Assembly: GCF_964188315.1 (NCBI RefSeq) | Contig: NC_135656.1 | Span: 3,472,001 to 3,536,000, forward strand | Direction of reading: 5' to 3' | Length of the DNA: 64,000 nucleotides | DNA from: Podarcis muralis | Lineage: Eukaryota | Notes under the pieces: model-generated | What the model saw: only the letters and a program-made list of their open reading frames with translations | The model's database searches: none | Told to the model about the DNA's origin: nothing | Translations under genes and position numbers: made by a program | Part shown: positions 7,909 to 64,000 of the stretch, piece by piece | How positions within the stretch are numbered: position 1 is the first letter of the stretch | Layout: each line of letters begins with the position of its first letter

Positions 7909-8693
7909 CACCTTCCTGCCTGAAGCAGCCCTTAATTGGGGACCTATATTCCTGCTTAAACCAGCTTTCTTTTTAGGACTGTGAACTTCGCTTTGCAACG
8001 CTGGTAGCCGCACCGTACATTTAAGGCGCCCCCACCAAGAATCCTGGGAAATGTAGTTTGTTAAAGGTGCTGGGAACGGCAGCTTTCTCAGGGTTCCAGA
8101 AACCATATTGAGCTCTTTGGGATTTTCAGAGATTTTTTTTGGGGGGGGGGGCTGTTAATAGATGCTGCGGAAATGAATTCTTCTTGTGGATTTTGCGTGT
8201 AGGAGATCCATCCCAGTATATAAGCACTACGGTTTGGGAGGAGGCCAGTTGTTTGGAAAGCACAAGGTTGACAGAAAAAGACACCCAGACTTTTGAGGAC
8301 TGTGGCAGATGAGGACAGAGGGAGACTGCGATTTGGGGAGAATGTATATCTTATTCTAAGTAAAGCTTAATTCCACAGAAACAGAAAAGATGTTTGACTT
8401 TCTAGGATATGGCACTGCTGTTCAGATCGCAAGTTACCCAACCTCACAATTACTTAGGGTCATGCAAACAGACCGATAGCCCATTCTAGTCCAATGCACT
8501 GATGTCCACAAAAACCGGACGGATGATTCAAGGAAGCTTTAAGGCAGGGCATGAAGGCACTTAGCTCTTCCCCCCCCTCCCAGAACTGATATTCCAGGAC
8601 AAACGGTTTTTATATCAGAACATTAATGCGCTATTAGAATTAAAAGAGGGGAAAACCCAGCCGGATGGACGGGGTCTAACTAAATTATTATTA

Positions 8694-8795
8694 CCGTATT
8701 TTTCGCTCAATAGGGTGCACCTAACCATACGGCGCACCTAGTTTTCAGAGGGGGAAATCAAGGAAAAAATATGCCCCCCCCCCCAGCTCTGGGAG
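8694..8795. mobile_element. Tigger/Tc-like MITE remnant at the left edge of the array
   Basis: Begins ccgtatttttcgctc, a Tc1/pogo-type TIR; occupies the place of ~770 bp present in the other units. Confidence 0.45.
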
Positions 8796-9237
8796 CAGCC
8801 AAGTCACAGGGAACCAGGCAGAGGCCTTCTCAGTGGTGGCGCCTTCTTCATGGTGATCCACTACTGCTTTAAGGGAGGTCTTGGAATAAGTAGATTTGTT
8901 GCTGATCCAAAACACCCACCCACCCCACTCACACATGAAAACAAAGACCACCACAGCCAACTACAAAGGAATAACCACACCCTAGGCCAACCCCAACCTC
9001 TCTCACCACCAAAGGAACACAAGCAAACAGCAAAGAACCTGCACAAACAACGCTGACACCAAACCCTACATATAGGAAGTAAAATAGAATAATCGCCTCC
9101 CCACCCCACCCCCACCCATCTCTTTCCCCTTTTCTTCCTAATTTCTTAACAAATGAAAATGATTTGTAAAAGTGTTACATGGGGGGGGGGGACATATGAG
9201 AGAGAGACATTGCACACTTTTGTAAATCAACAAAATC

Positions 9238-9267
9238 TTTAATAAATAAATAAATAAATAAATAAAT
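9238..9267 (-). terminator. Candidate ATTAAA poly(A) signal preceded by an (ATTT)n tract, present in all six full copies
   Basis: Plus-strand tttaat at 9238-9243 followed by (aaat)n, ~140-165 nt downstream of the stop codon. Confidence 0.5.
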
Positions 9268-9291
9268 ACTAGTCCTAAAAAAGAGGCCTCC

Positions 9292-9485
9292 TCACCTGAA
9301 GGACCTCAAAGCCCACCTGAAGTCCCAAAACAAAACTATCAGATCCTGATCCATGGAGATCCATGCGTGTATGGAGCGATCTGTGTGGATCTGCATCTGA
9401 TAGTTTAGTCTTTACGGTTGAAGGGAATCACATGTATAATCGTATGTTTGGGGACATCAGGTGGGCTTTGATGTCCTTCAGGTGA
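9292..9485. repeat. Inverted repeat spanning the claudin stop codon (copy 1)
   Basis: 9292-9332 pairs with 9445-9485 (38/41) and 9333-9353 with 9386-9406 (19/21), 38-nt bulge, 32-nt loop. Same structure at 15169, 19401, 26013, 30107, 37284, 44053, 50175 and 62790. Confidence 0.9.
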
Positions 9486-10511
9486 CCTTTGGGGTGTATG
9501 GCTTTCCTCCATCTCCACTGTGCAGGATTCCTCTGGAATGACAAGATCACTTGCACAGCTTTCCTCCATCTCCACTGCGCAGGATTCCTCTGGAATGACA
9601 AGATCACTTGCACAGCTTTCCTCCATCTCCACTGCGCAGGATTCCTCTGGAATGACAAGATCTTCCGCATGGGTCTTCTCCATCTCCACTGCGGAGGATT
9701 TCTCTTGAATTACCACGTCCAGCAGAGAACCACACTTCGAACAAGTAGTAAGACTCTCGCTTTTCACCCCACTTCCTGGGGTAATCACCACCACAGTTTC
9801 TATTTGAGATGTATCTGTTGCGGTGGTCCTGATGCAACATCTCTCCATCCCAACCAATGCTGCACTCAGCAGCTGGAAACCCGCAGCGATATAGCCTAGA
9901 TAAATAGAAGGTCCAATATGCTGCTCGCTGGGAATTTGAGGCAATTCAAAAGCTTCTGGGAAGACAATTTCCCCATTTTGTAAGACAGCAGACATGTTCC
10001 ATATCACAGAAATCAGGACGAGTATCCCTGCAGGTAAGTTCAGCAGAGCTCCAAGGCTAAAAAAGGTTAACACAAAATCCTTATGTTTTCTGGGCTTGAA
10101 CACGTTGTACAAAGCAAATGAAATTAATCCGAGGGCCGCTGAATTCATGATGGAAGCTAATGCCATTAAATCTTGGGCAATAAAAATTTCCCTTGGGAGG
10201 GTTGGATGTTGCTCATTGAGGTCTTCGCAATGCCAAAAAGCGTTGCCGTCGTTAGAAGGGTCTTTCCAAAAACAGACCTGCCAGATTCCAATCCAGATGT
10301 TCCCAGAGCCGATTCCCTTGATGTTTTCCACACGCCACACTCTCCAGTTGGCAATGGCTATTGAGGCAATGCACATCATCCAGGCCAAAATATCCATCAG
10401 GAATGCACACAACTGGAGACTGGAAACTACACTCAGCCATTTGACCACCAGGTCTTTCACCCGCAGGGGGGGTTTGGAGAGGCGGGGAGCAGGGGAGACC
10501 TTGGCAGACAT
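9405..10511 (-). CDS. CLDN34: Claudin-34-like protein, copy 1 (~368 aa)
   Basis: Four hydrophobic helices and a claudin ECL1 signature WRVW..GIWQVC..C plus LPREIFIAQDL typical of CLDN34. The ORF call extends to 10559, but the extra 16 codons look like an intron polypyrimidine tract. Symbol means family-level likeness. Confidence 0.85.
   Translation of the reverse strand: MSAKVSPAPRLSKPPLRVKDLVVKWLSVVSSLQLCAFLMDILAWMMCIASIAIANWRVWRVENIKGIGSGNIWIGIWQVCFWKDPSNDGNAFWHCEDLNEQHPTLPREIFIAQDLMALASIMNSAALGLISFALYNVFKPRKHKDFVLTFFSLGALLNLPAGILVLISVIWNMSAVLQNGEIVFPEAFELPQIPSEQHIGPSIYLGYIAAGFQLLSAALVGMERCCIRTTATDTSQIETVVVITPGSGVKSESLTTCSKCGSLLDVVIQEKSSAVEMEKTHAEDLVIPEESCAVEMEESCASDLVIPEESCAVEMEESCASDLVIPEESCTVEMEESHTPQRSPEGHQSPPDVPKHTIIHVIPFNRKD
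9503..9710 (-). repeat. 57-bp coding VNTR (19-aa unit EESCAVEMEESCASDLVIP)
   Basis: Three near-perfect units plus one diverged unit in the C-tail; copy 4 has two fewer (114 bp shorter). Confidence 0.93.
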
Positions 10512-10560
10512 CCTGGAAACAAAAGAGAAGACAAGATGCAGTGAGAGAGGGAATAACAAG
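10512..10560 (-). promoter_or_regulatory. Splice acceptor immediately upstream of the MSAK start codon
   Basis: Minus strand tcttgtcttctcttttgtttccag|GATGTCTGCC, conserved in all six copies. Confidence 0.65.
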
Positions 10561-11678
10561 CATGTCTAGTCATTGAAGGACATCCTCCCTCCTGCATTCT
10601 TCCTTCTATGCACAGAAAGAAGCAGCAAAAGAAACGAGTTCCCCTGCTCTCTCCCACCCCCTGGTGAGGTATAGACATCTGATCCAGAGAAGCCGACACT
10701 CATCGTTTCTTCCAGCACACTGCTACTGATTTAATCTACTGTTGCATTGTTCCTGGGAAAATGGCCAGAACCTCAGCAACCTGTTGTGGATGGGAAGCTG
10801 CTCATGATTCACTGCTCTGCTATCTGCTACTGCAGCTATCCTTTTCCACTGAGCCTAAACACACCTGATGGCATAGTGAGGAATGTTTAACCCATAAACT
10901 TACGTGAAATGCCTTCCTCAGCTAGAGTCTAGTGTGCCAGGAACAGAGCAGGTCTTTGCTAGGTGCTCCTGAGCCTCAAGAAGACGGAGCTGTTGACCAC
11001 TGAGCTGACGTTCGCCTGAGCAGCCAGCCAGCCACAGCAGCAACTGCTCTGCAGAATTCTTAGGTCAGTTACAGGCCAGTTAGAATCCTGACAACAACAC
11101 AAATCATAACTCCAGGGTACTGGTCATTTGGAACATCAGGAAAGTGGGAAATGGGAGGGAACTCACTTCCCTTCTTTCCCAATGCAGAGTGTCTATTCCA
11201 GGACACTGTGCAGTTAAAACACGTTCTTCCTGAAGTCAGAATCAGAGCAGTTCCAGCAGTAAAACTGGTGATACAGTATGTGTATCTCAGTACAGATTTG
11301 TTTGATGGGCCTGAATGCATTTCATAAAGGATCTCCATGTACAAGAAAGGCTAATAGCATGAGAATTTCCTTGGCAAAATTATTGAAGACTCCTTACAAA
11401 CCTATCATTCTTCTTCCCCATCCCATCTTGTTTGGACGTTATAGTAAGGGAGAAGATCTTAGCTCTTTTCCTTTGCACTGGGACCACATGGAGTTTGTGC
11501 CATGGGACCCCATCACTCACAATAATCCAGGCAATACCATTTTCAGAACCTAGGTGTCCATGATTTAAAATCGCTTTCCTAAGACACTTCCGTCAAAATA
11601 TTTGTGTTGCTTTCTTTCTGTTCCTTTCTGTGTTGATGCTCCGAATGTGAGCTGCTCAGCTGCATGCAGTTTCCACTG

Positions 11679-11679
<1 letters not shown>

Positions 11680-11719
<40 letters not shown>
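11680..11719. repeat. (GT)n microsatellite, length-variable between units
   Basis: Also near 21790, 32496, 39558, 46437 and 52570. Confidence 0.9.
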
Positions 11720-11720
<1 letters not shown>

Positions 11721-12010
11721 TTAACATTCGGCCAAGCAATGGGCCTAAATCCATGTATTTCACCTGAAATAACTTTGGGAGCCAGCCTTTAAAAATCTAA
11801 AGTGATATCAAATTCGGAGGAATTAAAAGCTGTCATCTTCTTGACTATTTTAAATATCTTAGAACATAGGTAAAGGTAAAGGGACCCCTGACCATTAGGT
11901 CTAGTTGTGCAGCAAATGGAGCATTAGAGTCATCCATTCATTTCAGGAGGTGTGACCATTGATAAGATGAAGCACTTTCACATCCACGTGGCAATGTGCA
12001 GTGCTTTTAA

Positions 12011-12295
12011 AAAGGTAAAGGACCCCCGACAGTTAAGTCCAGTCGCAAACGACTCTGGGGTTGCACCACTCATCTGGCTTTACTGGCCGAGGGAGCCGAC
12101 GCTGGTCGACAGAAAACTTTTCTGGGTCATGTGGCCAGCATGACTAAGCCGCTTCTGGCAAAACCACAGCAGCGCACAGAAACACCATTTACCGTCCCTC
12201 TGGAGCGGTACCTATTTATCTACTTGCACTTTGACGTGGTTTGGAACTGCTAGGTTGGCAGGAGCAGGGACCGAGCAACGGGAGCTCACCCCGTC
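12011..12295 (-). mobile_element. Sauria SINE (lacertid-type), unit 1
   Basis: aaaggtaaagg tail, ctgggtcatgtggccagcatgactaagccgcttctggc and cggtacctatttatctacttgcac. A short second tail fragment lies at ~11872-11905. Confidence 0.85.
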
Positions 12296-12545
12296 AAATA
12301 CGCAAGTCCAGTTCTGTATCTGCATGACATCCTCCACGCCCAAATGCTCTCCCGTACTGTTTCCCCCACTTAATCAGGATACACCATCTCCATTGAAACC
12401 TCTGCTCAGTGACACCCATCCAAGAGAAAAGTGCTGACCGTCTTCACGCAGATACAGTTCTGCGCAGGGGTCTGGCCGACAAGTTCTTCCCGCGTGTGGG
12501 GATGTTTTCAGGGGCTCTTTACTTTTCCCTGCCTCCCCTTTCATC

Positions 12546-12960
12546 CTCACCTGAGGAGATCTTGGCCATTCTCTTGACAGGGACCTCCGTTCTCAGGCTG
12601 GATTTCTGTTTTCCTTCATCCCTCCTTCTCCCGGTCTGCTTCACTGAGCAAATAAGAGAGAGGAGGTCTCATGCAAGTCAAGGTGTGCAATGGATCTTCA
12701 GGGCATTTGGAAGGAAGAAAAGGTTCAGGAACAAGCGACACAGCAGCCCCCCAAGCGTAGAAACACATTTGAACATATCGCTCATGAGATTCGCCCCACC
12801 CCCTTAGGATATAAATGCAGAACATCCTGCGCTCCTATTAAAATACAAAGTGGGGTATTTCATATGATAAGCACAGATGAAGCTGCCTTATACGGAGCCA
12901 GACCAATTTTGAGAAAGTGCTACATGGGCTACTCCACCAATTGGCTATCAATGAGAACAT
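12546..12960 (-). promoter_or_regulatory. Candidate promoter and non-coding first exon of the claudin unit
   Basis: Minus-strand donor CAG|gtgag at 12551/12550, GC box near 12790, TATAAA on plus near 12809, two CCAAT motifs at 12900-12945. Motif-only evidence. Confidence 0.3.
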
Positions 12961-13344
12961 AGCAAAACACAAAATGGCTGCCACATGGTGTGGTATGAAA
13001 TAAATTTGCCTGGCTGTGGGGCGTGAAGGCCGCACCCTGCAAGACCCTTCCCACGTGGCTTAGGCCCAGACTTGCTAGCCCCACAAAAGAGGCTCCTCAT
13101 GAGGCCAGAGGAACATGGCCTGGCTGTGGGGCATGATTCGAAACCTCCAGTCCCAGTCCAGTGCTCTAACCACTAAACCACACTGCCCCCCATTGCAGTC
13201 TATAATAGCCTGGAGGGCCACAGATGCCCCATATTCTCTGGCTCTGAGATTGCCCAAAGTTTCCTTTCTCTCCCTGGTTGTGCACAAAGAAAAATGCCCA
13301 TGACAAAATGTGACCTTTTTGGTTCTTTGGAGACAGTTCTGCTT

Positions 13345-13382
13345 CCCTCTCTCTCCCTTTCTCTTTCTCTCTCTCTCTCTCT
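13345..13382. repeat. (CT)n microsatellite, length-variable between units
   Basis: Source of the poly-RE ORFs. Also near 23452, 34155, 41222 and 54242; falls in the N gap in unit 5. Confidence 0.9.
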
Positions 13383-15281
13383 TCATTTAAAGGAGCCTCA
13401 TCCCTTTTCCCACCCAACTTCCTCCTGCACACAGCTTCAAAATTTCCATGAAGAACTAACTAAATAACCAACCCATAATTGGAATTTATGAGATTAAGGA
13501 GATAAATTATTTTTATATAATGAAAATAGATGGGAGGATAAGTTAATTGCGCAAGGCGAGAATATATAGGATGGCAAAAAATTAAAACAAAGATTATGAT
13601 TTGGTTTCTTAAAATAACACCAACACATGCCTCCTCAGTGGATTTCAGAACAAATCTCTCTCTCTTTTTTTAAATTACGCAAACACTGTAATGCAAGGAG
13701 TTGTAGTAGTGACAATGCAGTGAGATTCTACTCAGAGAAAGCCTATTGGAATGAATGGGTTTGAATTAGTTGTGTCCTTTAGTTTTTGCTTTTAATCTGG
13801 ATAATACCTAATTAGGGGTAGGGATTGCTTTGCTTTCTTTCTGTTCTTGTTTTTATTAAGTATTTTGTTGGGTTGTTTTTGTCGTTGTTGAAATTCCACA
13901 AATTGCACATCAGGATTCGTTACATAGTAAGTCCCCCCCCCCCTTTTCTATTATCTGCTTCCCATCCCACTTCCTAGGATGTTTTTTTCTTTTCCACCCT
14001 TAGCTGCAACTTATCTTCCCTCTTTTATATCAGAACTCTAATGCTCTATTTGAATTAAAAGAGGGGGAAACCCAGCCGGATGGGCGGGGTCTAACTAAAC
14101 TATTATTGTTGTCTTATTTATTTATTTGTGTTTTTATCTTGTATAAAAAATAAAACCCCCCAAAACCCAAAGTTGAAGCAAGAAGGCATCTTCAAATGTT
14201 AAATAAACACAAGCAGTGAATTGCCAGGACTTGGTTGCCCCTGGTGATGAATTCACTCTTTCCACCCACCCACCCCCCTTTCAAAAATGTGCATGGAATG
14301 AAAGAGCTGGCATTCAATTCTATTCTTTTAAAAGCATATTTTCTATTATCATTGGGTCCATTCGGACAAATATTGGGTCCCTTCTCTCACTTTTGACCCT
14401 TCTTGATTCCCTCATTTCTGGGGGTTGGACTAGATGACCCATGGGGTCCCTTCCAACTCTTCCGTTCTACGATTCTCTCGCCTACAATTCCGACACCCAC
14501 TTCATGTTGTACCAATCATATCAGCAGATAAACCACATTTTCTTCAGTTGATGGTATTTTTTTAGGGGGTAGAAAGGAGTGTGGCTTTGTTTGGGAGGTT
14601 TTTGTTAGGAAATCCTGACATCCAGTGGATGGGGAACGCATGACAGCTGACGTTACACGCCCAACATCCACTTAAAAGCCATATGGTGCCTTGAAACGCT
14701 TCCCCCAAAAGGATTCTGGGAGCTGTAGTGCTGTAGTCCCAGCACTACCATTCCCAGAGTTCTCTGGGAAGTTGTGGGCATCTCTTTTGAGAGGCAATGG
14801 AGTGCGCCTCCGGGGGTGAAATCAAAGCTTTTCAGCAGCCGCTAGAAGGAAAAACAAAGGAGACGCCTGCGAGAAGCCAAGTCACAGGGAACCAGGCAGA
14901 GGCCTTCTCGGTGGTGGCGCCTTCTTCATGGTGATCCACTACTGCTTTAAGGGAGGTCTTGGAATAAGTAGATTTGTTGCTGATCCAAAACACCCGCCCA
15001 CCCCACTCACACATGAAAACAAAGACCACCACAGCCAACTACAAAGGAATAACCACACCCTAGGCCAACCCCAACCTCTCTCACCACCAAAGGAACACAA
15101 GCAAACACAAGCAAACAAAATCTTAAATAAATAAATAAATAAATACTAGTCCTAAAAAAGAGGCCTCCTCACCTGAAGGACCTCAAAGCCCACCTGAAGT
15201 CCCAAAACCAAACTATCAGATCCTGATCCATGGAGATCCATGCGTGTATGGAGCGATCTGCGTGGATCTGGATCTGCTAGT

Positions 15282-15380
15282 TTAGTCTTTATGGTTGAAG
15301 GGAATCACATGTATAATCGTATGTTTGGGGACATCAGGTGGGCTTTGATGTCCTTCAGGTGACCTTTGGGGTGTATGGCT
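15282..15380 (-). pseudogene. Claudin 3'-end stub 1 (last 32 codons, ending FNHKD*)
   Basis: Matches the claudin 3' end and stops abruptly at a TG-starting LTR. Confidence 0.9.
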
Positions 15381-15757
15381 GTGGCATTTGCCTCTTAGGA
15401 TGGGTCATAAGGAAAGGGTTAAAATGGGTGTGATGTGATTGGCCAGTGAGAATGCAAGGGGGGAGTAAAAGTTAGAGTGGGAGGTTTTGAAAGTCAGTTG
15501 AGGTTTGGGAGTTGGAGAAGGAAGAGGGAGAAATAGGCCGTGGGTTGGTCAAGTTGTATTGTGAGAGAGTGAGAGGAATTGTTAGGTGGAGTCAGATAGA
15601 TACCGGTAGTTGGAATAATCAGTTTGGAGTTGTTAGGAACTAAGATGAAGCAACTGACAAGAGAAAAATAAACTGAAACCATACGCTTGTTCCTGCATTT
15701 AATAATAAACTTGATCATTTGTTAATGTTAACAACTGTCTGGACTCTGTGTGTCACA
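15380..15757 (+). mobile_element. Solo LTR, 378 bp, no TSD
   Basis: TGTGGCA...TGTCACA ends, ATTGG box, AATAAA ~45 nt from the 3' end. Flanks atggc and gtggt do not match. Confidence 0.7.
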
Positions 15758-16345
15758 GTGGTGGCCACATGTGGTGGGAGTGTGAAAAGATAAAAAAAAA
15801 TTTGGGACTTAATATATAATGAATTGAAGAAGCTTTTTAAGTATACATTGCCGAAAAAACTGGGGGCTTTTTTATTAGGGATAATAGGGGAGGAAGTAAA
15901 AAAGGAGGATCATAAATTATTCCAATATGCTACAGCAGCAGCTAGGATCCTTGTAGCTCAAAAGTGGAAGTCACAGGAGACCCCAACGGTTATGGAATGG
16001 CAGGCTAAATTTTTTGAATACACAGAATTAGCTAAAAAGACGTATAAAATCTGGGACCAAAAAGGGACAAAGTTTGAAGAAGAATGGGGTAAATTTGTGG
16101 CATACATAAGAATTAACTGTAGAAGTTTAAAAACTACAGCAGGGTAAACATAAATCCTGTGATGTGTATAGAAGTTAATAAGAATCTGTAAGAGAAGATA
16201 TATATTAAGAAAACCGCAGCTGGGAAGGAAGGAAGTCTGGGCGTGAATATACACAGTGTAAATAAGATGACATAAAATGATGACTGTAAAAGATTGTTTT
16301 ATTTCGTTTGTGAAAAAACTCAATAAAAAGTATTTGCAAAAAAAG
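15758..16345 (+). mobile_element. L1-clade LINE 3' fragment
   Basis: GHMWWECEKIK..FLLGII..YATAAARILVAQKWK, with an AATAAA and A-rich tail near 16322-16360. Confidence 0.85.
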
Positions 16346-17139
16346 AAAAAGAAAGAAAGCAATCACAATGGTGGCACAGGGTCAATAGACTGTCAAATGT
16401 CCGGGGGCCCTGTGTGATCGCCACGAAATTGGTGGTAGCGGTGGGAAAACAACCGTACCTGCGGTGCAATAACATCACTACCTGTCACCACAGAAGTGGT
16501 AGGCAAGTGGTGGGATTTGGTGGGGAAAACAATACACCTGGAGGGGGGAGGGTAAATCTGTGAAGGGATTACCTAGCCCGGGGGTGTAGTTGCGTGGCGA
16601 GTTCCCGCCCCCCACCAGGATAAATAAAGACACGAGACACCATAGTTTAAGGTTAAATGGGCGAATTAGGCCACAACTTTATTGAATTCAGGAATGAGAG
16701 GCATTGGCTTAGGCATTGGTCCTAACGACTATCCGGCTCCAGCCCATTTGCTGGAGACACAGGGAAGGGTTAACTCTAAATCGGGGGAGTCTCCCGCCAA
16801 GGCACGTCGACTAGGAGCTCCCCCGGGTCACCGCTCTGGGGCGTGCCTTTGGCCCTCACCTCCATAGGCTTCGGACAGGGCCACACCCCCCGGAGACCTT
16901 TAACGGACCACCCTTCGCTCACTGGGGGGAGGTGATGGCGTTCCTCCCCCCCCACATCCTCTTAACCCCTTCTTACCAATGCCTACCGCCACACGAGCAA
17001 TCGCTCACCGCCAATACTCTCATGCCTGAAACCAATCTCTTACCCCCTTTGCTATATCAGTAAGCCACATGTCATTTCCCACATCTGAAAGATGCACGCC
17101 ATCAAGCCGGTAGAGGGCCTCCCACCCACCCAGGGCTGC

Positions 17140-17520
17140 CACTCTACGCACCACCGCCCGATCCAAGGCTTTCCTAGCCCTATTTGTGGCTATCGGGCAC
17201 CTGCTCTCTCTCCAAACCCGGCTTTCCATCAACAAGGCCCCAAGAATGGTGATGTTTGGATAAGAGGCCTTACGCACCACCGCCCGATCCAAGGCTTTCC
17301 TAGCCCTATTTGTGGCTATCGGGCACCTGCTCTCTCTCCAAACCCGGCTTTCCATCAACAAGGCCCCAAGAATGGTGATGTTTGGATAAGAGGCCTTAGG
17401 CACCACCGCCCGATCCAAGGCTTTCCTAGCCCTATTTGTGGCTATCGGGCACCTGCTCTCTCCCCAAACCTGGCTTTCCATCACCAAGGCCCCAAGAATG
17501 GTGATGTTTGGATAAGAGGC
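17140..17520. repeat. 126-bp tandem repeat x3 inside the SGNH ORF (x2 in the second copy)
   Basis: 42-aa unit repeated; ORF is 179 aa here versus 137 aa at 27864..28277. Confidence 0.9.
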
Positions 17521-18586
17521 CTTAAGTTCCTCAAAGTCACTAAAGATATGCCACATCAAGTCGACTGCCTTTCTGTAAACTGAATCCTTTTCGCCTAATT
17601 GGATAACCCAAGCATCTGGGGGGGCCCACCGCTGCCGCTCTGGCCCTAATTGCAGGCAACATTCCGGCCCAGTGCATTTCCCTCCGAGAGATCCATGATA
17701 TATTGATGTAGTTTAAGGTGCGGCCCGAGACCGGAATTGATGGCGCAGACCCTGGCCCAATGCACAATGCTGTGCCCGATTATCCAGATGCGCGCCCTCA
17801 TAGCTCCTGCACCATAGGGTCCCTGTTAACGGCATGGTTTCTAACCCGGTGGACAGTGCAGGGACAGTGCAGGGCCTATAATCCAAATGTGCACCACAAC
17901 GTCACCTGAAAGCAAAAGAAGGTAACGAAGCCAGGTCAAGTATACTGTGAACAATCACAAGGTCTTACGAATATATCCCTTAAATGCATCAGACTTCCAC
18001 TGCCCCCAAGTCCTTCATCCTTTCAGCTAAGAGTCGCAAATGCAGTGCTGTGGTGGCGGCCCCAATCCTAAAGGAGTTAGCCACGAATTCAGCTGAGGAT
18101 AAACCGCAGGCAGCAATCACCCTTTGCATAATGCACGTGGACTGATGCCATGCAAGGCGGGAGCCAACCAAATGTATAAGAAATGGACCTGAGACGGTTG
18201 GTCTCACGTACATGAAATGTTTAGTGTCCTTTACTGCTGATCGTTTTTGGAACATTGGACATGCAGGACTAAATTGGATCTGAACAAGGTCAGGTCTCTC
18301 AAACTAACCCCAGGCAGCGGATTCTGGTTGGCCCTTACAAACCACTTCGCCAATGCGCATAGCGCCAAATGCAATGGAGTATGCAGCTGAAAATAACCGG
18401 GCCTTGTCCTCGGACCAACAGATACTCCATATTTTATTTTATTATTATAATTTTAATTTTATTTAATTATTTATTTATTTTGGAATTGGCATAGAATGTC
18501 ATAAGGGCCTTCTACCATCACTTTTAGGAGGCTGCAGCCTGCGCCAGCCCTACAACAACAACAACAACAATAATAATAGGAATAAT

Positions 18587-18674
18587 AAAAAAATTCCTTC
18601 CAGTAGCACCCCAAAGACCAACTAAGTTAGTTCTTGGTATGAGCTTTCGTGTGCATGCACACTTCTTCAGATAC
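18587..18674. mobile_element. Penelope-like element terminal fragment inside the Ngaro copy
   Basis: aaattccttccagtagcacc..gagctttcgtgtgcatgcacacttcttcagata resembles reptile Penelope ends. Also ~29305-29392. Confidence 0.55.
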
Positions 18675-21787: not shown

Positions 21788-21825
<38 letters not shown>

Positions 21826-23453: not shown

Positions 23454-23502
<49 letters not shown>

Positions 23503-25947: not shown

Positions 25948-25986
<39 letters not shown>

Positions 25987-46434: not shown

Positions 46435-46474
<40 letters not shown>

Positions 46475-52564: not shown

Positions 52565-52615
<51 letters not shown>

Positions 52616-52905: not shown

Positions 52906-53190
52906 AAAGGTAAAGGACCCCCGACAGTTAAGTCCAGTCGCAAACGACTCTGGGGTTGCACCACTCATCTGGCTTTACTGGCCGAGGGAGCCGACGCTGG
53001 TCCACAGAAAACTTTTCTGGGTCATGTGGCCAGCATGACTAAGCCGCTTCTGGCAAAACCACAGCAGCGCACAGAAACACCATTTACCGTCCCTCCGGAG
53101 CGGTACCTATTTATCTACTTGCACTTTGACGTGGTTTGGAACTGCTAGGTTGGCAGGAGCAGGGACCGAGCAACGGGAGCTCACCCCGTC
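52906..53190 (-). mobile_element. Sauria SINE, unit 6
   Basis: Paralogous to 12011-12295. Confidence 0.8.
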
Positions 53191-54257: not shown

Positions 54258-54301
<44 letters not shown>

Positions 54302-55423
54302 ATTTAAAGGAGCCTCATCCCTTTTCCCACCCAACTTCCTCCTGCACACAGCTTCAAAATTTCCATGAAGAACTAACTAAATAACCAACCCATAATTGGA
54401 ATTTATGAGATTAAGGAGATAAATTATTTTTATATAATGAAAATAGATGGGAGGATAAGTTAATTGCGCAAGGCGAGAATATATAGGATGGCAAAAAATT
54501 AAAACAAATATTATGATTTGGTTTCTTAAAATAACACCAACACATGCCTCCTCAGTGGATTTCAGAACAAATGTCTGTCTCTTTTTTTAAATTACGCAAA
54601 CACTGTAATGCAAGGAGTTGTAGTAGTGACAATGCAGTGAGATTCTACTCAGAGAAAGCCTATTGGAATGAATGGGTTTGAATTAGTTGTGTCCTTTAGT
54701 TTTTGCTTTTTATCTGGATAATACCTAATTAGGGGTAGGGATTGCTTTGCTTTCTTTCTGTTCTTGTTTTTATTAAGTATTTTGTTGGGTTGTTTTTGTC
54801 GTTGTTGAAATTCCACAAATTGCACATCAGGATTCGTTACATAGTAAGTCCCCCCCCCCTTTTCTATTATCTGCTTCCCATCCCACTTCCTAGGATGTTT
54901 TTTTCTTTTCCACCCTTAGCTGCAACTTATCTTCCCTCTTTTATATCAGAACTCTAATGCTCTATTAGAATTAAAAGAGGGGGAAACCCAGCCGGATGGG
55001 CGGGGTCTAACTAAACTATTATTGTTGTCTTATTTATTTATTTGTGTTTTTATCTTGTATAAAAAATAAAAAACCCCAAAACCCAAAGTTGAAGCAAGAA
55101 GGCATCTTCAAATGTTAAATAAACGCAAGCAGTGAATTGCCAGGACTTGGAAGCCCCCTGGTGATGAATTCACTCTTTCCACCCACCCACCCACCCCCCT
55201 TTCAAAAATGTGCATGGAATGAAAGAGCTGGCATTCAATTCTATTCTTTTAAAAGCATATTTTCTGTTATCATTGGGTCCATTCGGACAAATATTGGGTC
55301 CTTTCTCTCACTTTTGACCCTTCTTGATTCCCTCATTTCTGGGGGTTGGACTAGATGACCCATGGGGTCCCTTCCAACTCTTCGGTTCTACGATTCTCTC
55401 GCCTACAATTCCGACACCCGCTT

Positions 55424-56078
55424 TATAGGGAGATGGGAAAAGAAATCTGCACCTATGCTCTCTACCTTGTGCCTGGGAAGGATCTTCTATATTCTCTCTA
55501 CCTTGGAAGTAAATTTCTGAGCTAATTTTACTCCTGCAAAAGAGGGCCCCTCGCTTGCTCTTATTTTAGGAATGCGAGGTCAGCTAGCCGCTAGCAAGAG
55601 ATAGCCAGACCTGCAAAATAGCCAGACCTGCAAAAGAGGCCCCTAGGAATGTAAGATAAGAAACACACAAAGAAGTTTCTCTCAATGTACTCTGTAAAAC
55701 TGTAAGCCAGAAATAACCAGACCTGTAAGCCAGAGGCCTCTCGCTTTCTATTTTAGGAATACAAGATAGCACAGGAGACAATGCAGGGCGCTTAGGTAAA
55801 ATAAGGAGGGGGCTGCTTAGAGGGCTAGCAAAATAGACTTATTGTTTTATATGTTGGCAGTCTGGAGGGAGGGAGTTTCCTCAAGGTATAAGAAACTCTG
55901 CAGAGGCGTATTTCTGGGCAGCCAGTCTCAGACGTGATTCTGCTGGCTGTCTCTCTGTGCACAAAGAATAAACTGCTTTCCTCCAAAGAAGAATCTTTCC
56001 TGGTGCTTACTTTTGCTCTCTCTCTGGATCTGGGGACGCGGGCTAACATTCCCTGGCATGGACTAGGCTCAGCCTACA
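55424..56078 (+). mobile_element. ERV 5' LTR
   Basis: TATAGG...CCTACA, TATA box near 55887, AATAAA at 55967-55972. Confidence 0.95.
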
Positions 56079-56081
56079 TCT

Positions 56082-56099
56082 TGGTTCCCTGACCGGGAA
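56082..56099 (+). promoter_or_regulatory. Primer-binding site complementary to the tRNA-Glu 3' end
   Basis: tggttccctgaccgggaa, 3 nt after the 5' LTR. Confidence 0.88.
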
Positions 56100-56407
56100 T
56101 CTGCCCCACCTCAGAGGGCTGGGGAGAGCCAGGCTCGACCTCGGTGGACAGCTCGGATCGGCGATTGCAGGCTCCACGCGCACCCTGCCAATTTGTGGGG
56201 GGAGCCAGCCACACCGCTCCGGAGCAAGGACCCAGGTCGAGGGAGGAAAGAGGACGGCGCCGAGGGGAAGGGAATCCGCAGCGGAAAAGGTAAGCCCGAC
56301 GGAAAGGGCAGCCCGACGGAAAGGGCGAGGCCTGATCAGCCTCACCTGGTTATGCAGTAGAGTGCAGCCAGGAAGGGAAAAAAAGGGCGTGGCAGAGGTA
56401 TGCCACC

Positions 56408-56710
56408 AATAATAAAGGGGATTGGTTGCGCAGTAGAGTGCCAGCCACCAGGAATAATAAAGGGGATTGGTTGCGCAGTAGAGTGCCAGCCACCAGGAAT
56501 AATAAAGGGGACTGGTTGTGCAGGAGAGTGCCACCAGCAAAAATTTGGAACAGAAGAAGGAGGGAAAATTATTTTGGTGTGTTTTGTGTATTGCATGCTG
56601 AGGTTATTTTGGTGTGTTTTGTGTATTGCATGCTGAGGTTATTTTGGTGTGTTTTGTGTATTGCATGCTGAGGTTATTTTGGTGTGTTTTGTGTATTGCA
56701 TGCTGAGGTT
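56408..56710. repeat. ERV leader tandem repeats: 45 bp x3 (56408-56535) and 35 bp x4 (56571-56710)
   Basis: aataataaaggggattggttgcgcagtagagtgccagccaccagg and attttggtgtgttttgtgtattgcatgctgaggtt. Confidence 0.92.
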
Positions 56711-56943
56711 ATTTTGGTGTGTTTAGTGTGTTACATGTTGAAATTATATTGATGTGATTTGTATGTTGTATGTTGCTATGTTGCATGTCAGATACTCCAG
56801 TGACTGAATTGTTGTTAAGTGTGAAGGTTGGGGCTTAGCGTTCCCCTTGGGTGATTGCAGGGTTGTGCATTTTCTGGCAGGTCTGTTGTGTGTGAAGTGT
56901 GAGAGAATTTTTATTGTGAATGGGAGCAGAGTATCTGGAAGAA

Positions 56944-58180
56944 ATGGGTTCTGGCCAAAGTAAAAGTACCCCTTTGAAATGCTTTTGGAGATCCAAGCTG
57001 ATGAGAGGGGAGGATGAGGATATTGTGTAAATTAGATTGGCCCACCCCAAAATAACAAATTGGCCGTCCACCGGGACCCTTGATTTGTAACTCATTAATC
57101 CATTATATCAGAACATTTTGAATGTCCGTTCTGATTAAATCCCCTACATTTCCACATGGAAGACCAATGTGGAAAAGAACCCCCCCCCCCCTGGCTGAAA
57201 TCATGCTGCCAAAAAGTCTCAGGCAGCCGTATCTGCTCAGTCAGGAAGACAGGAGGACAACCCCCAGTCCTCCAGGATTCAGAGAGGGAAGAAGATAATA
57301 GTTTTGATGCCCCCACCGCCTCATGCCCCGGCAACAGCCCTGGCACCACCCACGCCACAGGGAGCAGATGGCCCAGTCCCAATCCCGTGGACAATGCATT
57401 GTTAAACCTGGGCGAAGATGGAGAAAGGGAGGAACAAGAAGAGGATGATGAGGATGAGGCATTTGTAGGAAGATTGATTAAGTTGACAAGTGATGAAAAG
57501 ATATGAACAGAGGAACAGGCAGAATGTTTGACAAAGTATGTGGAACTTTATGAGAAGTGGACGTCAGTCCCCATATGTTAAAAACAGCGGGATGTATAGG
57601 GGAACAGAGAAGAAAGTGGCAGAAGGAGTGGGGAAGGCAGTGAAAAGAGTGACCCGCCATAGGGCACATAAAGCACAGGAGAAGGGCGCGGCCAGAGTGA
57701 TGCCTCTCCATAGAGTGTATGACCCTCCGGCCCCCGCGGGACCTGATGGGGTGGTGCCCAATAGAACTCATACAGTTCAACATGTCCCCTTCTCTAGTGC
57801 AGATGTTTGTAATTGGAAGAACCAAAACCCTTCATTTGAAGAAAACCCTGCCAAAATCATTAAGCTGTTTGAGGATGTGTAATATTTGATGGATGCCCTG
57901 CTAGCTACAGAGGAGGATAGGCGAATTCATGCTGAAGCCCGAGCACACATGAGAGCGCAGGGGGCAGGAGATCAAGCTGTTGCAGCAGGATATCCTGAAA
58001 ATACACTGAATTGGGATTATCAGATCATTGAAGGGCAAAATAGCCCAAACCACTTATAATCAGAGGAAAAAGAGACCCAGAAAAAAAAAAAGAGGGAGAA
58101 GTACCAGGCAGAGAAGTTGATGGCCCTGAAGACGGGAGGTCCACCGTTAGGAGAAGAAGAGGAGGGCGAGGCCGCTTAGG
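56944..58180 (+). pseudogene. gag: Degenerate gag (MA to CA)
   Basis: MGSGQSKSTPLKC start, WPSTGTLDL (MA) and [19 protein letters not shown] (CA), with stops and frameshifts. Confidence 0.85.
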
Positions 58181-60250
58181 AAAGAGCAACAGCATGCCTT
58201 CAAGGATTTGAAAAAGGCATTGCAGCAAGCACCAGCGCTGGGCATCCCAAATCCTGAGAAGCCTTTCTCCCTGTTTGTGGATGAAGACCAGGGAACAGCA
58301 AAGGGAGTGCTATGCCAAAAATTGGGAAGCTGGCAGCAGCCCGTGGCATATCTATCTGAGCGCCTGACGCCTACAGAACAAGGTTTACCGCCATGCATGA
58401 GAGCAGTAGTGGCAGTAGCCACCCTACTGCACAAAGCAGACAAATTTACTTTTGGCCAAGACACTGTTTGTGTGACCCCGCATGCAGTCCCAGCTCTGCT
58501 TGACATGAAGGGTACCTATTTCCTCTCCCAAGCAAAAATGAGAAAGTGCCAGATGCTATTGTTGCACCCGCGTTTGAAGTTCCAGGTTACCACCGCCCTG
58601 TTGCCGGTAGGAGAAGGTGAGGAGCAGATGCACGATTGCATTGAAGTGATGGATGAAGTATATTCCAGCAGACCTGACCTAAAAGATGAGGCAAACCCCC
58701 ACTGGCCTTCATGGTTTGTAGATGGAAGCAGCTTTGTTGAGACTGGACAGCGGAAAGCAGGCTATGCAGTGGTAGCCCTAGAAGACCAGGTGATCGAAGC
58801 AAAGAGACTCCCACCTGGAACATCGGCCCAGCTGGCAGAGTTAACTGCGCTTACCAGAGCCCTGAGCCTGGCAAAGGGACAGAAGATAAACATTTATACA
58901 GATTCTAAGTATGCATTCCTGACTTTACATGCCCATGGAGCCTTATGGAAAGAAAGAGGTTTGCTTACCTCCAGAGGGAGCCAGGTGGCCCACCCTCAAG
59001 CCTTATTGAACCTTCTGGATGCTGTATGGGAGCCTGAGGCAGTGGCAGTTATCCATTGTTATGGACACAAGACTGGACCAGGGGAAGTGGCCAGAGGAAA
59101 CCGATTGGCAGACAGAGTAGCCAAGGAAGCAGCCCAAGAACTGGCCCCCGCCTCGGTTATTGGAGCACTGGTCCCAGAAGAGATTTTAAGCACTACTGAC
59201 AAGCCAGCTTATACGAAGCAGGAAAGGGACACTGCAGACACTCAGGGGTTGACGTTGTCCAATGAAGGATGGTACCTTACCCCTGATGACAGGATATGGA
59301 TTCCAGAGTCCCTTTCTCGGCAGGTTACTCAGAGATACCATGATTCAACCCACATAGGACCAGATGCTACAACCAAGCAGCTGGAAAAATGCTTCTATAT
59401 AGCCCACCTTTACCAACTGGCAGCCCAGATCTCCAGGAAATGCCTGCTGTGTCAAAAAAAATAATAATCCCAGAGCCGGACCACTGGCTCCCCCAGGGAT
59501 TCAGCACAGTGGAACTGCACCTATGGAAGATCTTGTCGTGGACTTTACTGAATTACCCCGTTGTGGACTGCACCGCTACCTGCTGGTGGCAGTGTGCACC
59601 TACACCGGATGGGCCGAAGCATGGCCCACAAAGACTGAAAAGGCATTTGAAGTAACCAGGTGCCTGCTTAGGGAAATCATCCCTCGCTATGGACTGCCAA
59701 GGTCCATAGGATCTGACAATGGACCAGCATTTGTTCATGCAGTCCTACAGGGACTGGCAAAAGCGCTCCAGATCAACTGGAAGCTGCATATTGCTTATAG
59801 ACCCCAGAGTTCTGGAAAAGTAGAGAGAATGAACAGAACTCTAAAGAATCAGCTGTCCAAGCTGACACAGGAGACCGGGTCAAATTGGGTGACCATGTTG
59901 CCCTTGGCGTTATTCAGGGTCCGCAGTCTCCCGTCAAAACGGACCCATCTGTCACCCTTTGAAATTGTATTTAGGAGACCGGTCCCATATGTCAGAATAT
60001 GCAATTGAATAATTAAGTCCAGATATTTTTCCGAGTTTTCTTTTGTCTCGACAGGTGGACCCAGGCTCGCAACCCCTGTGTGTTGGCTGCATCAGTTCGA
60101 GCCAGGTGACGAAGCGTAGGTGAAAGACTGGCAGCAAGCCCCCCTACAGCCTTGCTGGAGGGGACCATACACTGTGCTACTTTCTACACCTACTGCTGTG
60201 AAGGTTGCTGGCATCACCCCGTGGGTCCACCCTACTCAGTAAAGAAAGCC
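58181..60250 (+). pseudogene. pol: pol remnant: RT connection, RNase H and integrase; protease and RT core deleted
   Basis: RNase H FVDGSS, AELTAL, YTDSKY, NRLAD; IN HHCC, VVDF, SDNG, GKVERMN; frameshift in the A-run at ~59455; GPY-type CTD with a stop. Confidence 0.93.
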
Positions 60251-60381
60251 ATTTCAAACTGGACAGTTACACCAGATCCTGAGAACTCCCTTCGGCTGAC
60301 CATCTCCAGGCGCCCGGTAGACGACCGCCCTGCTGGTGTCACTCCGGAGGCTGATACCTCTACGCACGGCTGAAAAATTGG

Positions 60382-60735
60382 ATGGGAGGGGCGCCCGCGG
60401 GCAGCGTCCCCAACGTAGAAACTTGCTCTCCAGCAAATTCAGAGGCACCAATGGGACTTTTGGTATTGGATCCAGAACCCCTTGATATAGTCACCCCAAG
60501 TGTCAGGCCATTGCAGGGGTGGACATATTCCTGTGGGTGCATGCTGATATATGAAGAGGGAAGAGCCCCTTTTGGGTATAATATCTTGAAGAGACAACAC
60601 GAGAGCCCAGTCCACCCACAAGGGATTGTAGGGAAATTGCTCCATATAGTAGGTGCCTCAGCAGAAAGGTGGAAAGTTACCCCTGAGGCCCAGGAAATAG
60701 TTGAATACGAGTATCAGTGGGCCCTTCAGCTGTAA
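60382..60735 (+). CDS. Hypothetical 117-aa ERV accessory ORF
   Basis: Intact ORF between pol and env; its ATG is the first after a candidate splice acceptor at 60053-60054. No homolog recognised. Confidence 0.4.
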   Translation: MGGAPAGSVPNVETCSPANSEAPMGLLVLDPEPLDIVTPSVRPLQGWTYSCGCMLIYEEGRAPFGYNILKRQHESPVHPQGIVGKLLHIVGASAERWKVTPEAQEIVEYEYQWALQL

Positions 60736-60748
60736 AAGAAAACTAGAA

Positions 60749-61386
60749 ATGACCGCCGAGTATTGGTGGGAGGAACCATGGAGATATTGGGTTTGGTGGG
60801 TAGGAGTGATATGTACCGCTCTTGTCATATGTATGCTCTTGTATTTCTGTTGGCATGAACGGTATCGTATTTGTGGGAAGAAACGTAATCCATCTATACC
60901 TTTGATGATTCTCCTTTTCTTTTTAGTTGGAGAACCCACATGTGTATTGGCACAGGCAGGAAAAAGTCCCCTGACCTCCCTTGCCGACATTTCCCGTTTG
61001 ATGATTGAGTGGGGTGCCCATAACTCCTACAATAGGTGGTTACAAATGGCTGAAATGGAGCATGTTGTTTCAACATTTCAGACCATGGCGAGGCTATCCG
61101 TGATCTGGCAGCAAGCATTGAAAAGGTGGCACATGTCCCTGTACAAACTTGGGAGGGCTGGGATATGTCTTGGTTGGATAGCATCTTCCCAGGTGGATGG
61201 ATGGGAAGGATATTTACTATGGTGATGGGCCCAATAATGCTTTTATTGCTTCTTTGCTTTTGTATACCCTGCTTAATGCAATGCTTGCAAAATATGATGG
61301 AGAAGATAATGTCTCGCATGATGGGACCTCGCGTGATTGCTTTCATGAGAGATTATAGACCCCTACCCCAGAACGAATCTAAGTAA
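60749..61386 (+). pseudogene. env: Internally deleted env (leader region plus TM C-terminus in a different frame)
   Basis: Two hydrophobic segments from MTAEY; in another frame CCFNISDHG..KVAHVPVQTWEGW, a membrane anchor and a tail ending at 61386. Confidence 0.75.
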
Positions 61387-61397
61387 TAGATTGTTCC

Positions 61398-61414
61398 AAA
61401 AGAAGAGGAGGGAG
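61398..61414 (+). promoter_or_regulatory. Polypurine tract
   Basis: aaaagaagaggagggag abutting the 3' LTR. Confidence 0.88.
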
Positions 61415-62069
61415 TATAGGGAGATGGGAAAAGAAATCTGCACCTATGCTCTCTACCTTGTGCCTGGGAAGGATCTTCTATATTCTCTCTACCTTGGAAG
61501 TAAATTTCTGAGCTAATTTTACTCCTGCAAAAGAGGGCCCCTCGCTTGCTCTTATTTTAGGAATGCGAGGTCAGCTAGCCGCTAGCAAGAGATAGCCAGA
61601 CCTGCAAAATAGCCAGACCTGCAAAAGAGGCCCCTAGGAATGTAAGATAAGAAACACACAAAGAAGTTTCTCTCAATGTACTCTGTAAAACTGTAAGCCA
61701 GAAATAACCAGACCTGTAAGCCAGAGGCCTCTCGCTTTCTATTTTAGGAATACAAGATAGCACAGGAGACAATGCAGGGCGCTTAGGTAAAATAAGGAGG
61801 GGGCTGCTTAGAGGGCTAGCAAAATAGACTTATTGTTTTATATGTTGGCAGTCTGGAGGGAGGGAGTTTCCTCAAGGTATAAGAAACTCTGCAGAGGCGT
61901 ATTTCTGGGCAGCCAGTCTCAGACGTGATTCTGCTGGCTGTCTCTCTGTGCACAAAGAATAAACTGCTTTCCTCCAAAGAAGAATCTTTCCTGGTGCTTA
62001 CTTTTGCTCTCTCTCTGGATCTGGGGACGCGGGCTAACATTCCCTGGCATGGACTAGGCTCAGCCTACA
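61415..62069 (+). mobile_element. ERV 3' LTR
   Basis: 655 bp; no difference from the 5' LTR found by eye. Confidence 0.95.
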
Positions 62070-62723
62070 GCTTCAGGTTGTACCAATCATACCAGCAGAT
62101 AAACCACATTTTCTTCAGTTGATGGTATTTTTTTAGGGGGTAGAAAGGAGTGTGGCTTTGTTTGGGAGGTTTTTGTTAGGAAATCCTGACATCCAGTGGA
62201 TGGGGAACGCATGACAGCTGACGTTACACGCCCAACATCCACTTAAAAGCCATATGGTGCCTTGAAACGCTTCCCCCAAAAGGATTCTGGGAGCTGTAGT
62301 GCTGAGAGCCATTTGGAGACACACCCCCCTATTCCCCTCCCAGAACTACCATTCCCAGAGTTCCCTGGGAAGTTGTGGGCATCTCTTTTGAGAGGCAATG
62401 GAGTGCGCCTCCGGGGGTGAAATCAAAGCTTTTCAGCAGCCGCTAGAAGGAAAAACGAAGGAGACGCCTGCGAGAAGCCAAGTCACAGGGAACCAGGCAG
62501 AGGCCTTCTTGGTGGTGGCGCCTTCTTCATGGTGATCCACTACTGCTTTAAGGGAGGTCTTGGAATAAGTAGATTTGTTGCTGATCCAAAACACCCACCC
62601 ACCCCACTCACACATGAAAACAAAGACCACCACAGCCAACTACAAAGGAATAACCACACCCTAGGCCAACCCCAACCTCTCTCACCACCAAAGGAACACA
62701 AGCAAACACAAGCAAACAAAATC

Positions 62724-62763
<40 letters not shown>

Positions 62764-62902
62764 ATACTAGTCCTAAAAAAGAGGCCTCCTCACCTGAAGG
62801 ACCTCAAAGCCCACCTGAAGTCCCAAAACAAAACTATCAGATCCTGATCCATGGAGATCCATGCGTGTATGGAGTGATCTGCGTGGATCTGGATCTGATA
62901 GT

Positions 62903-63001
62903 TTAGTCTTTACGGTTGAAGGGAATCACATGTATAATCGTATGTTTGGGGACATCAGGTGGGCTTTGATGTCCTTCAGGTGACCTTTGGGGTGTATGGC
63001 T
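62903..63001 (-). pseudogene. Claudin 3'-end stub 3
   Basis: Same breakpoint as stubs 1 and 2. Confidence 0.9.
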
Positions 63002-63378
63002 GTGGCGTTTGCCTCCTAGGATGGGTCATAAGGAAAGGGTTAAAATGGGTGTGATGTGATTGGCCAGTGAGAATGCAAGGGGGGAGTAAAAGTTAGAGTG
63101 GGAGGTTTTGAAAGTCAGTTGAGGTTTGGGAGTTGGAGAAGGAAGAGGGAGAAATAGGCCGTGGGTTGGTCAAGTTGTATTGTGAGAGAGTGAGAGGAAT
63201 TGTTAGGTGGAGTCAGATAGATACCGGTAGTTGGAATAATCAGTTTGGAGTTGTTAGGAACTAAGATGAAGAAACTGACAAGAGAAAAATAAACTGAAAC
63301 CATACGCTTGTTCCTGCATTTAATAATAAACTTGATCATTTGTTAATGTTAACAACTGTCTGGACTCTGTGTGTCACA
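63001..63378 (+). mobile_element. Solo LTR, third copy
   Basis: Paralogous to 15380-15757. Confidence 0.7.
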
Positions 63379-63980
63379 GTGGTGGCCACATGTGGTGGGA
63401 GTGTGAAAAGATAAAAAAAAATTTGGGACTTAATATATAATGAATTGAAGAAGCTTTTTAAGTATACATTGCCGAAAAAACTGGGGGCTTTTTTATTAGG
63501 GATAATAGGGGAGGAAGTAAAAAAGGAGGATCATAAATTATTCCAATATGCTACAGCAGCAGCTAGGATCCTTGTAGCTCAAAAGTGGAAGTCACAGGAG
63601 ACCCCAACGGTTATGGAATGGCAGGCTAAATTTTTTGAATACACAGAATTAGCTAAAAAGACGTATAAAATCTGGGACCAAAAAGGGACAAAGTTTGAAG
63701 AAGAATGGGGTAAATTTGTGGCATACATAAGAATTAACTGTAGAAGTTTAAAAACTACAGCAGGGTAAACATAAATCCTGTGATGTGTATAGAAGTTAAT
63801 AAGAATCTGTAAGAGAAGATATATATTAAGAAAACCGCAGCTGGGAAGGAAGGAAGTCTGGGCGTGAATATACGCAGTGTAAATAAGATGACATAAAATG
63901 ATGACTGTAAAAGATTGTTTTATTTCGTTTGTGAAAAAACTCAATAAAAAGTATTTGCAAAAAAAGAAAAAGAAAGAAAG
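63379..63980 (+). mobile_element. L1 3' fragment, third copy
   Basis: ORF 63445..63768. Confidence 0.85.
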
Positions 63981-64000
63981 CAATCACAATGGTGGCACAG

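Follow-up and report, generated by a model that had tools for sequence, protein, structure and literature searches.

A run of near-identical, claudin-like reading frames in a lizard genome raises the question of whether it represents a genuine amplification of one gene and, if so, to which claudin lineage the copies belong and what keeps them intact. The stretch concerned is 64,000 nucleotides of the wall lizard Podarcis muralis (NCBI RefSeq assembly GCF_964188315.1, contig NC_135656.1, positions 3,472,001–3,536,000 of the forward strand), hereafter called the window, in which a first-pass annotation described a recent tandem amplification of a claudin-34-like gene. CLDN34 is among the least understood claudins, yet on the sex chromosomes of mammals it is found time and again as an amplified family with expression in the testis, and mouse has several X-linked Cldn34 genes (Cldn34a/b/c/d). 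Our analysis makes it highly probable that the tandem array in the window is genuine and young, that it consists of complete claudin-34-like genes with two exons each, and that it is one sub-array of a CLDN34-clade expansion in lacertids.

The window contains six stop-free claudin-family open reading frames (ORFs), all on the minus strand and arranged head to tail. They occupy positions 9405–10559 (copy 1), 19514–20668 (copy 2), 30220–31374 (copy 3), 37397–38437 (copy 4), 44166–45320 (copy 5), and 50288–51442 (copy 6). Counting protein lengths from the first ATG of each ORF, the coding exons span 9405..10511 (ATG at 10511 and stop at 9405–9407), 19514..20620, 30220..31326, 37397..38389, 44166..45272, and 50288..51394. 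Each copy encodes 368 residues, apart from copy 4 with 330 residues, which has undergone an in-frame loss of 114 nucleotides corresponding to two 57-nucleotide tail repeats (19 residues each) fewer than in the other copies. The encoded proteins are identical to P0019, P0001, P0022, P0002, P0020, and P0017, respectively. The ORF calls, together with the unit alignments described below, bear out the earlier description of six near-identical, uninterrupted frames in tandem, and the copies are indeed young, intact, and tandemly arranged.

The repeated units are considerably larger than the genes. Self-BLAST and unit-versus-unit BLAST delimit a minus-strand array of six gene units at 8789..64000. 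Its left edge, which had been put at 8607, lies close to that position, at approximately 8789, and the DNA to the left of this edge is unrelated to the units and includes the tail of an ORF2 from a long interspersed nuclear element (LINE-1, L1). Start-to-start spacing from copy 1 to copy 6 is 10109, 10706, 7063, 6883, and 6122 bp. A segment of approximately 4 kb is present in the long units (1, 2, and 6) and missing from the short units 3–5; long forms measure about 10.1–10.7 kb and short forms 6.1–7.2 kb, with unit 6 running off the window. Self-alignment gave 98–99% identity between units when gaps were included; counting substitutions only, units differ by 0.5–0.9%, and coding sequences (CDSs) by 0.4–1.2% in pairwise comparisons. 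Positions 62070–64000 consist again of unit sequence, with the long-unit segment as in units 1 and 2. The proposed continuation of the array beyond the window is thus partly reflected in the DNA, since unit sequence reaches base 64000, although there is no seventh ORF inside the window; judging from this sequence, extension of the array past the window end is plausible.

The array contains one assembly gap, a run of 136 N at 48090–48225, which is the only N run in the window. The gap is intergenic, between copies 5 and 6, approximately 2.8 kb upstream of the copy 5 ATG and 2.1 kb downstream of the copy 6 stop, and is crossed by no reading frame. Both of its flanks match one unit with order and orientation kept (unit-2 offsets 3928 and 4007). 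This phase fits a small gap and equally fits the presence of whole hidden units. Because the gap could conceal such units, six copies should be taken as a minimum.

Upstream of each coding frame, we found a splice acceptor (TTTCCAG|G) with a polypyrimidine tract, located one base before the ATG. To locate the first exon, which is largely noncoding, the N-terminal extension of a PodMur_1.0 gene model served as tblastn query; it maps approximately 2.04 kb upstream in every unit. In copy 1, this exon lies at 12551..12700 on the minus strand (the 5′ limit is approximate) and ends at the donor CAG|GTGAGG; the corresponding exon ends in the other units are near 22656, 33362, 40427, 47305, and 53446. 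The intron between exon 1 and the acceptor is about 2.04 kb in every unit, and the end of exon 1, the donor, and the acceptor are letter-identical in all six. An ATG within exon 1 (12619–12593 on the minus strand, with equivalents in all six copies) opens only an eight-codon upstream ORF (MKENRNPA*), so translation is expected to start from the ATG in exon 2. Based on these signals, each unit holds a complete two-exon gene with its entire coding sequence in one exon.

Some further features of these genes deserve mention. A PodMur_1.0 model of the same subfamily reads through from the exon-1 ATG and thereby acquires a 23-residue N-terminal extension; this difference fits a one-base length change in an A run. 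The PodMur_1.0 model P0029 (XP_028576901) has an odd C terminus that maps just upstream of the exon 1 of a neighboring unit (12619–12699 and equivalents), which suggests splicing from the tail repeat of one copy into the 5′ region of the next, that is, a read-through or chimeric model. Each copy also has a 41-nucleotide inverted repeat with 93% complementarity (9292–9332/9445–9485 in copy 1, with equivalents in the others), in which the last codons of the CDS pair with the 3′ untranslated region across the stop codon, and a second, weaker inverted-repeat pair lies at 9327–9361/9378–9412.

The encoded proteins show the characteristics of claudins. Pfam searches matched PF13903 (Claudin_2) with 45.1 bits against a cutoff of 29.1 (1.3e-11 for copy 1), and copy 4, which matches the same family, additionally matched PF00822 (PMP22_Claudin) with 31.8 bits against a cutoff of 26.7. 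A profile built from the lacertid and Rhineura relatives matched claudin-4, -3, -19, and -9 in the PDB across the whole domain (3.5e-11 to 2.5e-8). An AlphaFold2 model based on a 59-sequence alignment reached a predicted local distance difference test (pLDDT) score above 90 at residues 30–230, whereas a model from a nine-sequence alignment gave a pLDDT of 43 and was discarded. The retained model has helices at residues 31–52, 107–136, 144–177, and 201–234, strands in the first and second extracellular loops (ECL1 and ECL2), and a disordered tail from about residue 235. In Foldseek searches, it matched claudin-3, -4, -19, -15, and -9 with target-normalized template modeling (TM) scores of 0.76–0.85. 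The claudin signature of ECL1 (W56, G75, W77, C80, and C95) shows little or no variation among 59 proteins of the CLDN34 clade and is unchanged in all six copies. Based on this model, each copy is predicted to encode a four-pass membrane protein with the claudin fold and an extracellular W-GxW-C-C signature.

The cytoplasmic tail comprises approximately 135 residues, is acidic and Cys-rich, and is built from a 19-residue repeat, DLVIPEESCAVEMEESCAS. This repeat is encoded by a 57-nucleotide coding tandem repeat that was detected by Tandem Repeats Finder at 9501..9710 on the minus strand, with 3.7 copies in copy 1. A protein alignment showed that the number of 19-residue repeats varies from two to five among copies and assemblies. 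The C-terminal -YV motif for PDZ binding was found in none of the six proteins, which end in ...IPFNRKD or ...IPFNCKD.

The six genes are part of a larger group. The window proteins lie on a P. muralis chromosome of 126,814,402 bp (126.8 Mb), and cluster listings assign at least 18 distinct family proteins to this chromosome, including the six from the window; this number is a lower bound, as the listing of one cluster covers 15 of its 32 members. Further P. muralis copies are located on 43.0-Mb (including P0018) and 83.7-Mb contigs, and an older sister lineage of the family is found on a 45.6-Mb contig. Consequently, the earlier count of at least six copies, correct for intact copies in the window, greatly understates the family, since this chromosome alone accounts for no fewer than 18 distinct proteins and three others add to them. 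Several copies each were also found in P. raffonei, P. lilfordi, and Zootoca, and at least three in Rhineura. In our maximum likelihood tree, the lacertid copies form a clade with 100/100 support that is sister to one Rhineura gene, so the bulk of the expansion arose within lacertids. P0071 and P0199–P0208 represent this older, second lineage of claudin-34-like proteins, which has several copies on a small chromosome (45.6-, 45.1-, and 44.6-Mb contigs of three Podarcis species); in the tree, it is sister to a Rhineura gene.

Within this family, the copies in the window share a diagnostic two-residue deletion (KD--LVV vs KEGSLVV), which, among the compared proteins, occurs only in P. muralis. 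The six proteins are no more than about 1.5% apart, and over the domain the sub-array shares 90% identity with its nearest paralogue. With 82–90% protein identity, the other claudin-34-like sub-arrays of this Podarcis chromosome are members of one family with it; the window sub-array differs from these in being purely head-to-tail and in carrying the KD--LVV deletion. The six copies are thus a young sub-array within a much more extensive Podarcis family, which itself is part of a lacertid expansion of the CLDN34 clade.

How the copies have come to be so similar was assessed from 4 kb that could be aligned in all six units. This alignment contains 27 informative sites, and the four-gamete test fails in 146 of the 351 site pairs, which implies at least eight exchange events within 4 kb. 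In copy 1 coordinates, variants that tell the copies apart lie at about 9511, 9521, 9672, 9795, 10104, 10313, 10357, and 10421. Variants in the gene region are shared between copies 3 and 5 and between copies 4 and 6, and further upstream between copies 3 and 4 and between copies 5 and 6. This pattern of sharing suggests the duplication of a two-unit block, followed by gene conversion or unequal crossing-over. Since such homogenization erases differences, the low divergence between units gives no date for the first duplication. Unequal crossing-over between the repeats most likely built the array, whose units are kept alike by gene conversion or unequal exchange that is still going on.

Whether selection has contributed to the integrity of the copies is a different issue, and it is here that several observations weigh against the reading of the array as a set of working genes. 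In pairwise comparisons, the copies diverge on average by 0.74% in the CDS and by 0.46–0.65% in the flanks, so that coding divergence is not below flanking divergence. The variable codons comprise 12 nonsynonymous and 6 synonymous ones, with 859 nonsynonymous and 245 synonymous sites available, and this 12:6 ratio is close to neutral. The copies differ by approximately 18 substitutions, and 4% of random substitutions would create a stop codon, so six intact ORFs are unsurprising under neutrality. The assembly gap described above lies within the array itself. Variation is unevenly spread along the protein: codons 75–265, from the end of ECL1 to the fourth transmembrane helix, contain no nonsynonymous and three synonymous variable sites, whereas the N terminus, the first transmembrane helix, early ECL1, and the tail together contain 12 nonsynonymous and three synonymous ones (Fisher p = 0.025 for the comparison with the core). 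This contrast, which is a post hoc partition with few sites, hints at a constrained membrane core with ends that may be free to vary or diversifying. Overall, the variation among the six copies shows no apparent sign of selection, and sequence alone does not establish that the copies are maintained by it.

These data bear most directly on the alternative that the array is real and selectively neutral, that is, a segmental duplication spread by unequal crossing-over, whose copies are intact because of their youth and of homogenization by gene conversion, are mostly redundant or silent, and are bound to decay. The coding divergence, equal to or above that of the flanks, and the near-neutral codon ratio are both in line with this idea, as are the pervasive mosaic exchange and the transposable elements and private insertions that are accumulating in the units. 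It accounts less well for the 191-codon membrane core, which has no amino acid change despite three synonymous changes, for splice sites, exon 1, and claudin signature residues that are identical in six of six copies, and for the many intact paralogues that have been kept in three Podarcis species, Zootoca, and Rhineura. Taken together, we regard a wholly neutral array as possible, if somewhat unlikely.

Assignment to the CLDN34 clade, rather than to some other group of claudins, relies on profile searches and phylogeny. Word-based protein searches with a single protein and with two alignments retrieved relatives in Lacertidae (Podarcis and Zootoca) and Rhineura only. An exhaustive profile search over 1.84 billion representatives, with E values up to 0.001, gave just 131 matches, and names were obtained for a sample of these. 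The matches include a turtle “Claudin 34” (3.6e-41), bat and possum claudin-34 (1e-29 to 2e-24), and mouse Cldn34c4 (3.9e-19), which was placed on a 169.5-Mb contig, followed by classic claudins (7, 4-like, 8-like, and 24/26; 7e-8 to 7e-4). The best nonsquamate matches are thus turtle, bat, and possum proteins that are named claudin-34, and the nearest clusters in the ESM Atlas carry the same name. A careful maximum likelihood tree of 66 rows, with only the classic claudins found by the profile itself as outgroups, sets a clade of 48 rows apart from 18 classic claudins, with 100/100 support for the split. The window protein falls into this clade together with every squamate relative and the CLDN34 proteins of turtle, bat, possum, and mouse. 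A quick tree of 107 rows agrees on this split, with a Shimodaira–Hasegawa-like approximate likelihood ratio test (SH-aLRT) support of 99.

The details of the tree call for some caution. Squamate proteins group with a monotreme/marsupial lineage (97/93), whose members carry the automatic names claudin-2/3/4-like, and not with therian CLDN34. There is no supported order of turtle and therian CLDN34 at the base of the clade, where branches are long and an attraction artefact is possible. We therefore distinguish between membership of the CLDN34 clade, to which the window proteins belong on phylogenetic grounds, and strict one-to-one orthology with mammalian CLDN34, which is at best tentative in view of this grouping. 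The label given in the first-pass annotation is upheld in the former sense by the Pfam Claudin_2 match, the names of the best nonsquamate matches, and the claudin phylogeny that had been proposed as a check, in which the window protein falls inside the CLDN34 clade.

One could argue that the proteins are another claudin or a PMP22-type tetraspan that was mislabeled as CLDN34 by automated naming, given that names across the family are inconsistent (“claudin-2-like,” “-3-like,” “-8-like,” or “uncharacterized”), that identity to mammalian CLDN34 is a mere 22–27%, and that word-based searches reached nothing beyond Lacertidae and Rhineura. We rejected this idea as very improbable, since CLDN34 proteins of turtle, bat, possum, and mouse outrank classic claudins in the profile search by 20 to 30 orders of magnitude, the window protein is included in a clade that is split from classic claudins at 100/100, and the closest ESM Atlas clusters are claudin-34. 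Inflation of one or two real copies to six, through repeat misassembly or retained haplotypes, is something that the high identity of the units and the N gap might be taken to favor, and we rejected it as equally improbable, because the six encoded proteins are all mutually distinct, the units differ structurally (long and short units, a 645-bp insert in unit 2, a long terminal repeat [LTR] element in unit 6, and the shorter repeat of copy 4), retained haplotypes would give two copies and not six, and at least four distinct members of the subfamily, with three to five tail repeats, are also encoded in an older and independent assembly, PodMur_1.0. The distinct proteins, the structural differences, and the PodMur_1.0 copies argue strongly against an artefact.

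We thus return to a real array of young claudin-34-like genes as the preferred interpretation. The copies are presumably transcribed and may work as nonclassical claudins, and, by analogy with mammals, they could act in the gonads. They may be kept by dosage or by diversification, or may simply not have had time to decay; the membrane core without amino acid change makes us lean slightly toward the view that at least some copies are functional. A more far-reaching idea is that germline processes have repeatedly driven the amplification of CLDN34-type genes across amniotes, and that the lizard copies are expressed in the gonads and owe their features to sexual or meiotic conflict, not to a role in epithelial barriers. 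In this scenario, the gene that became ampliconic on the mouse X, carnivore Y, and bat Y chromosomes would have expanded independently in wall lizards, reaching dozens of copies on one large chromosome, with rapidly changing N-terminal and ECL1 segments and an acidic, Cys-rich tail of variable length. We consider it speculative and improbable as it stands.

The remaining features of the window are of secondary importance. An LTR retroelement of 6.65 kb at 55424..62073 on the plus strand interrupts unit 6 only and lies outside the gene family. Its 659-bp LTRs differ from each other at one base. Its pol region consists of an RNase H/reverse transcriptase–RNase H/integrase zinc-finger fragment (58208–59464) and an integrase core (59523–60008); as these parts are in separate ORFs, pol is broken. 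The element is missing from the other units, so insertion occurred after unit 6 had formed, and unit 6 is older than the insertion. The private 645-bp insertion of unit 2 (24600–25244) is found in no other unit and contains a 185-residue ORF (24670–25227, minus strand). A 126-bp tandem repeat (three copies, 98% matches) is located at 17145–17524 and, in unit 2, at 27860–28240, within the segment specific for long units, and yields spurious ORFs on both strands (17020–17559 and 17092–17583).

To the left of the array, a 512-residue ORF without Pfam match (562–2100, minus strand) resembles the C-terminal part of LINE-1 ORF2 and contains a zinc-knuckle-like motif (CWKC...HLWWTCP), in AT-rich surroundings with a GC content of 0.37. 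The left flank holds only this L1 fragment, and no flanking gene was found within the window. A 191-residue plus-strand ORF overlaps each of the claudin genes; these ORFs were rejected as genes, being frames antisense to the claudin CDS. Pfam gave no match for the ORFs at 22514–23068 (plus strand), 24670–25227 (minus strand), and 56043–56540 (minus strand), and a match below threshold only for the ORF at 17020–17559 (minus strand). Rfam and tRNA scans of the window gave no match.

A literature search found no paper on a claudin-34 expansion in lizards; in public annotation, the genes are already present as predictions called “claudin-34-like” or “uncharacterized.” The lizard array is an undescribed, lineage-specific tandem expansion of a family that is known to amplify. 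Should a reptile indeed have reached dozens of copies independently, this would mean that the gene itself is predisposed to amplification, beyond the biology of mammalian sex chromosomes. Wall lizards are well studied for sexual selection and hybridization, which makes copy number, expression, and selection comparable across sexes, populations, and species. In addition, the locus is an example of a young array under the influence of gene conversion and unequal exchange.

Comparison with known systems puts these results into perspective. Mammalian CLDN34 has its whole coding sequence in one exon that follows a noncoding exon. The mammalian genes and their amplified derivatives belong to the same claudin sub-clade as the lizard copies, and they share with them the single coding exon, the fast protein divergence of young copies, and the repeated amplification into near-identical multicopy arrays (PMC6280758, PMC13715679). 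CLDN34Y is an ancestral Y-linked gene that is reported to be multicopy within Carnivora, in cat and dog (PMC6280758), and Rhinolophus sinicus has 52 Y-linked CLDN34 copies with elevated X–Y omega (PMC13715679). Those of the bat Y copies that are expressed, as well as mouse Cldn34c4, show testis-specific expression (PMC13715679, PMC10943590), and knockdown of Cldn34c4 reduced testis weight and sperm number (PMC10943590). The parallel between mammalian and lizard amplification that was drawn initially is therefore apt.

There are differences as well. The lizard proteins have 330–440 residues, compared with approximately 212–228 in mammalian CLDN34, because of the repeat-built, acidic, Cys-rich tail. 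The lizard array lies on a 126.8-Mb chromosome, and in the tree the squamate proteins are placed with the monotreme/marsupial lineage and apart from therian CLDN34 proper. Classic claudins (CLDN3, 4, 9, 15, and 19) have in common with the lizard copies the four-helix bundle and the extracellular β-sheet, at the TM scores given above, as well as the W-GxW-C-C signature of the first extracellular segment. Relative to these classic claudins, lizard identity is 17–22%, the signature cysteines are 14 residues apart, and the disordered tail of about 135 residues ends in -RKD or -CKD without the -YV PDZ-binding motif. Finally, the lizard array resembles ampliconic germline gene families of the sex-chromosome type, in that it likewise consists of near-identical units (0.5–0.9%) with at least eight exchanges in 4 kb.

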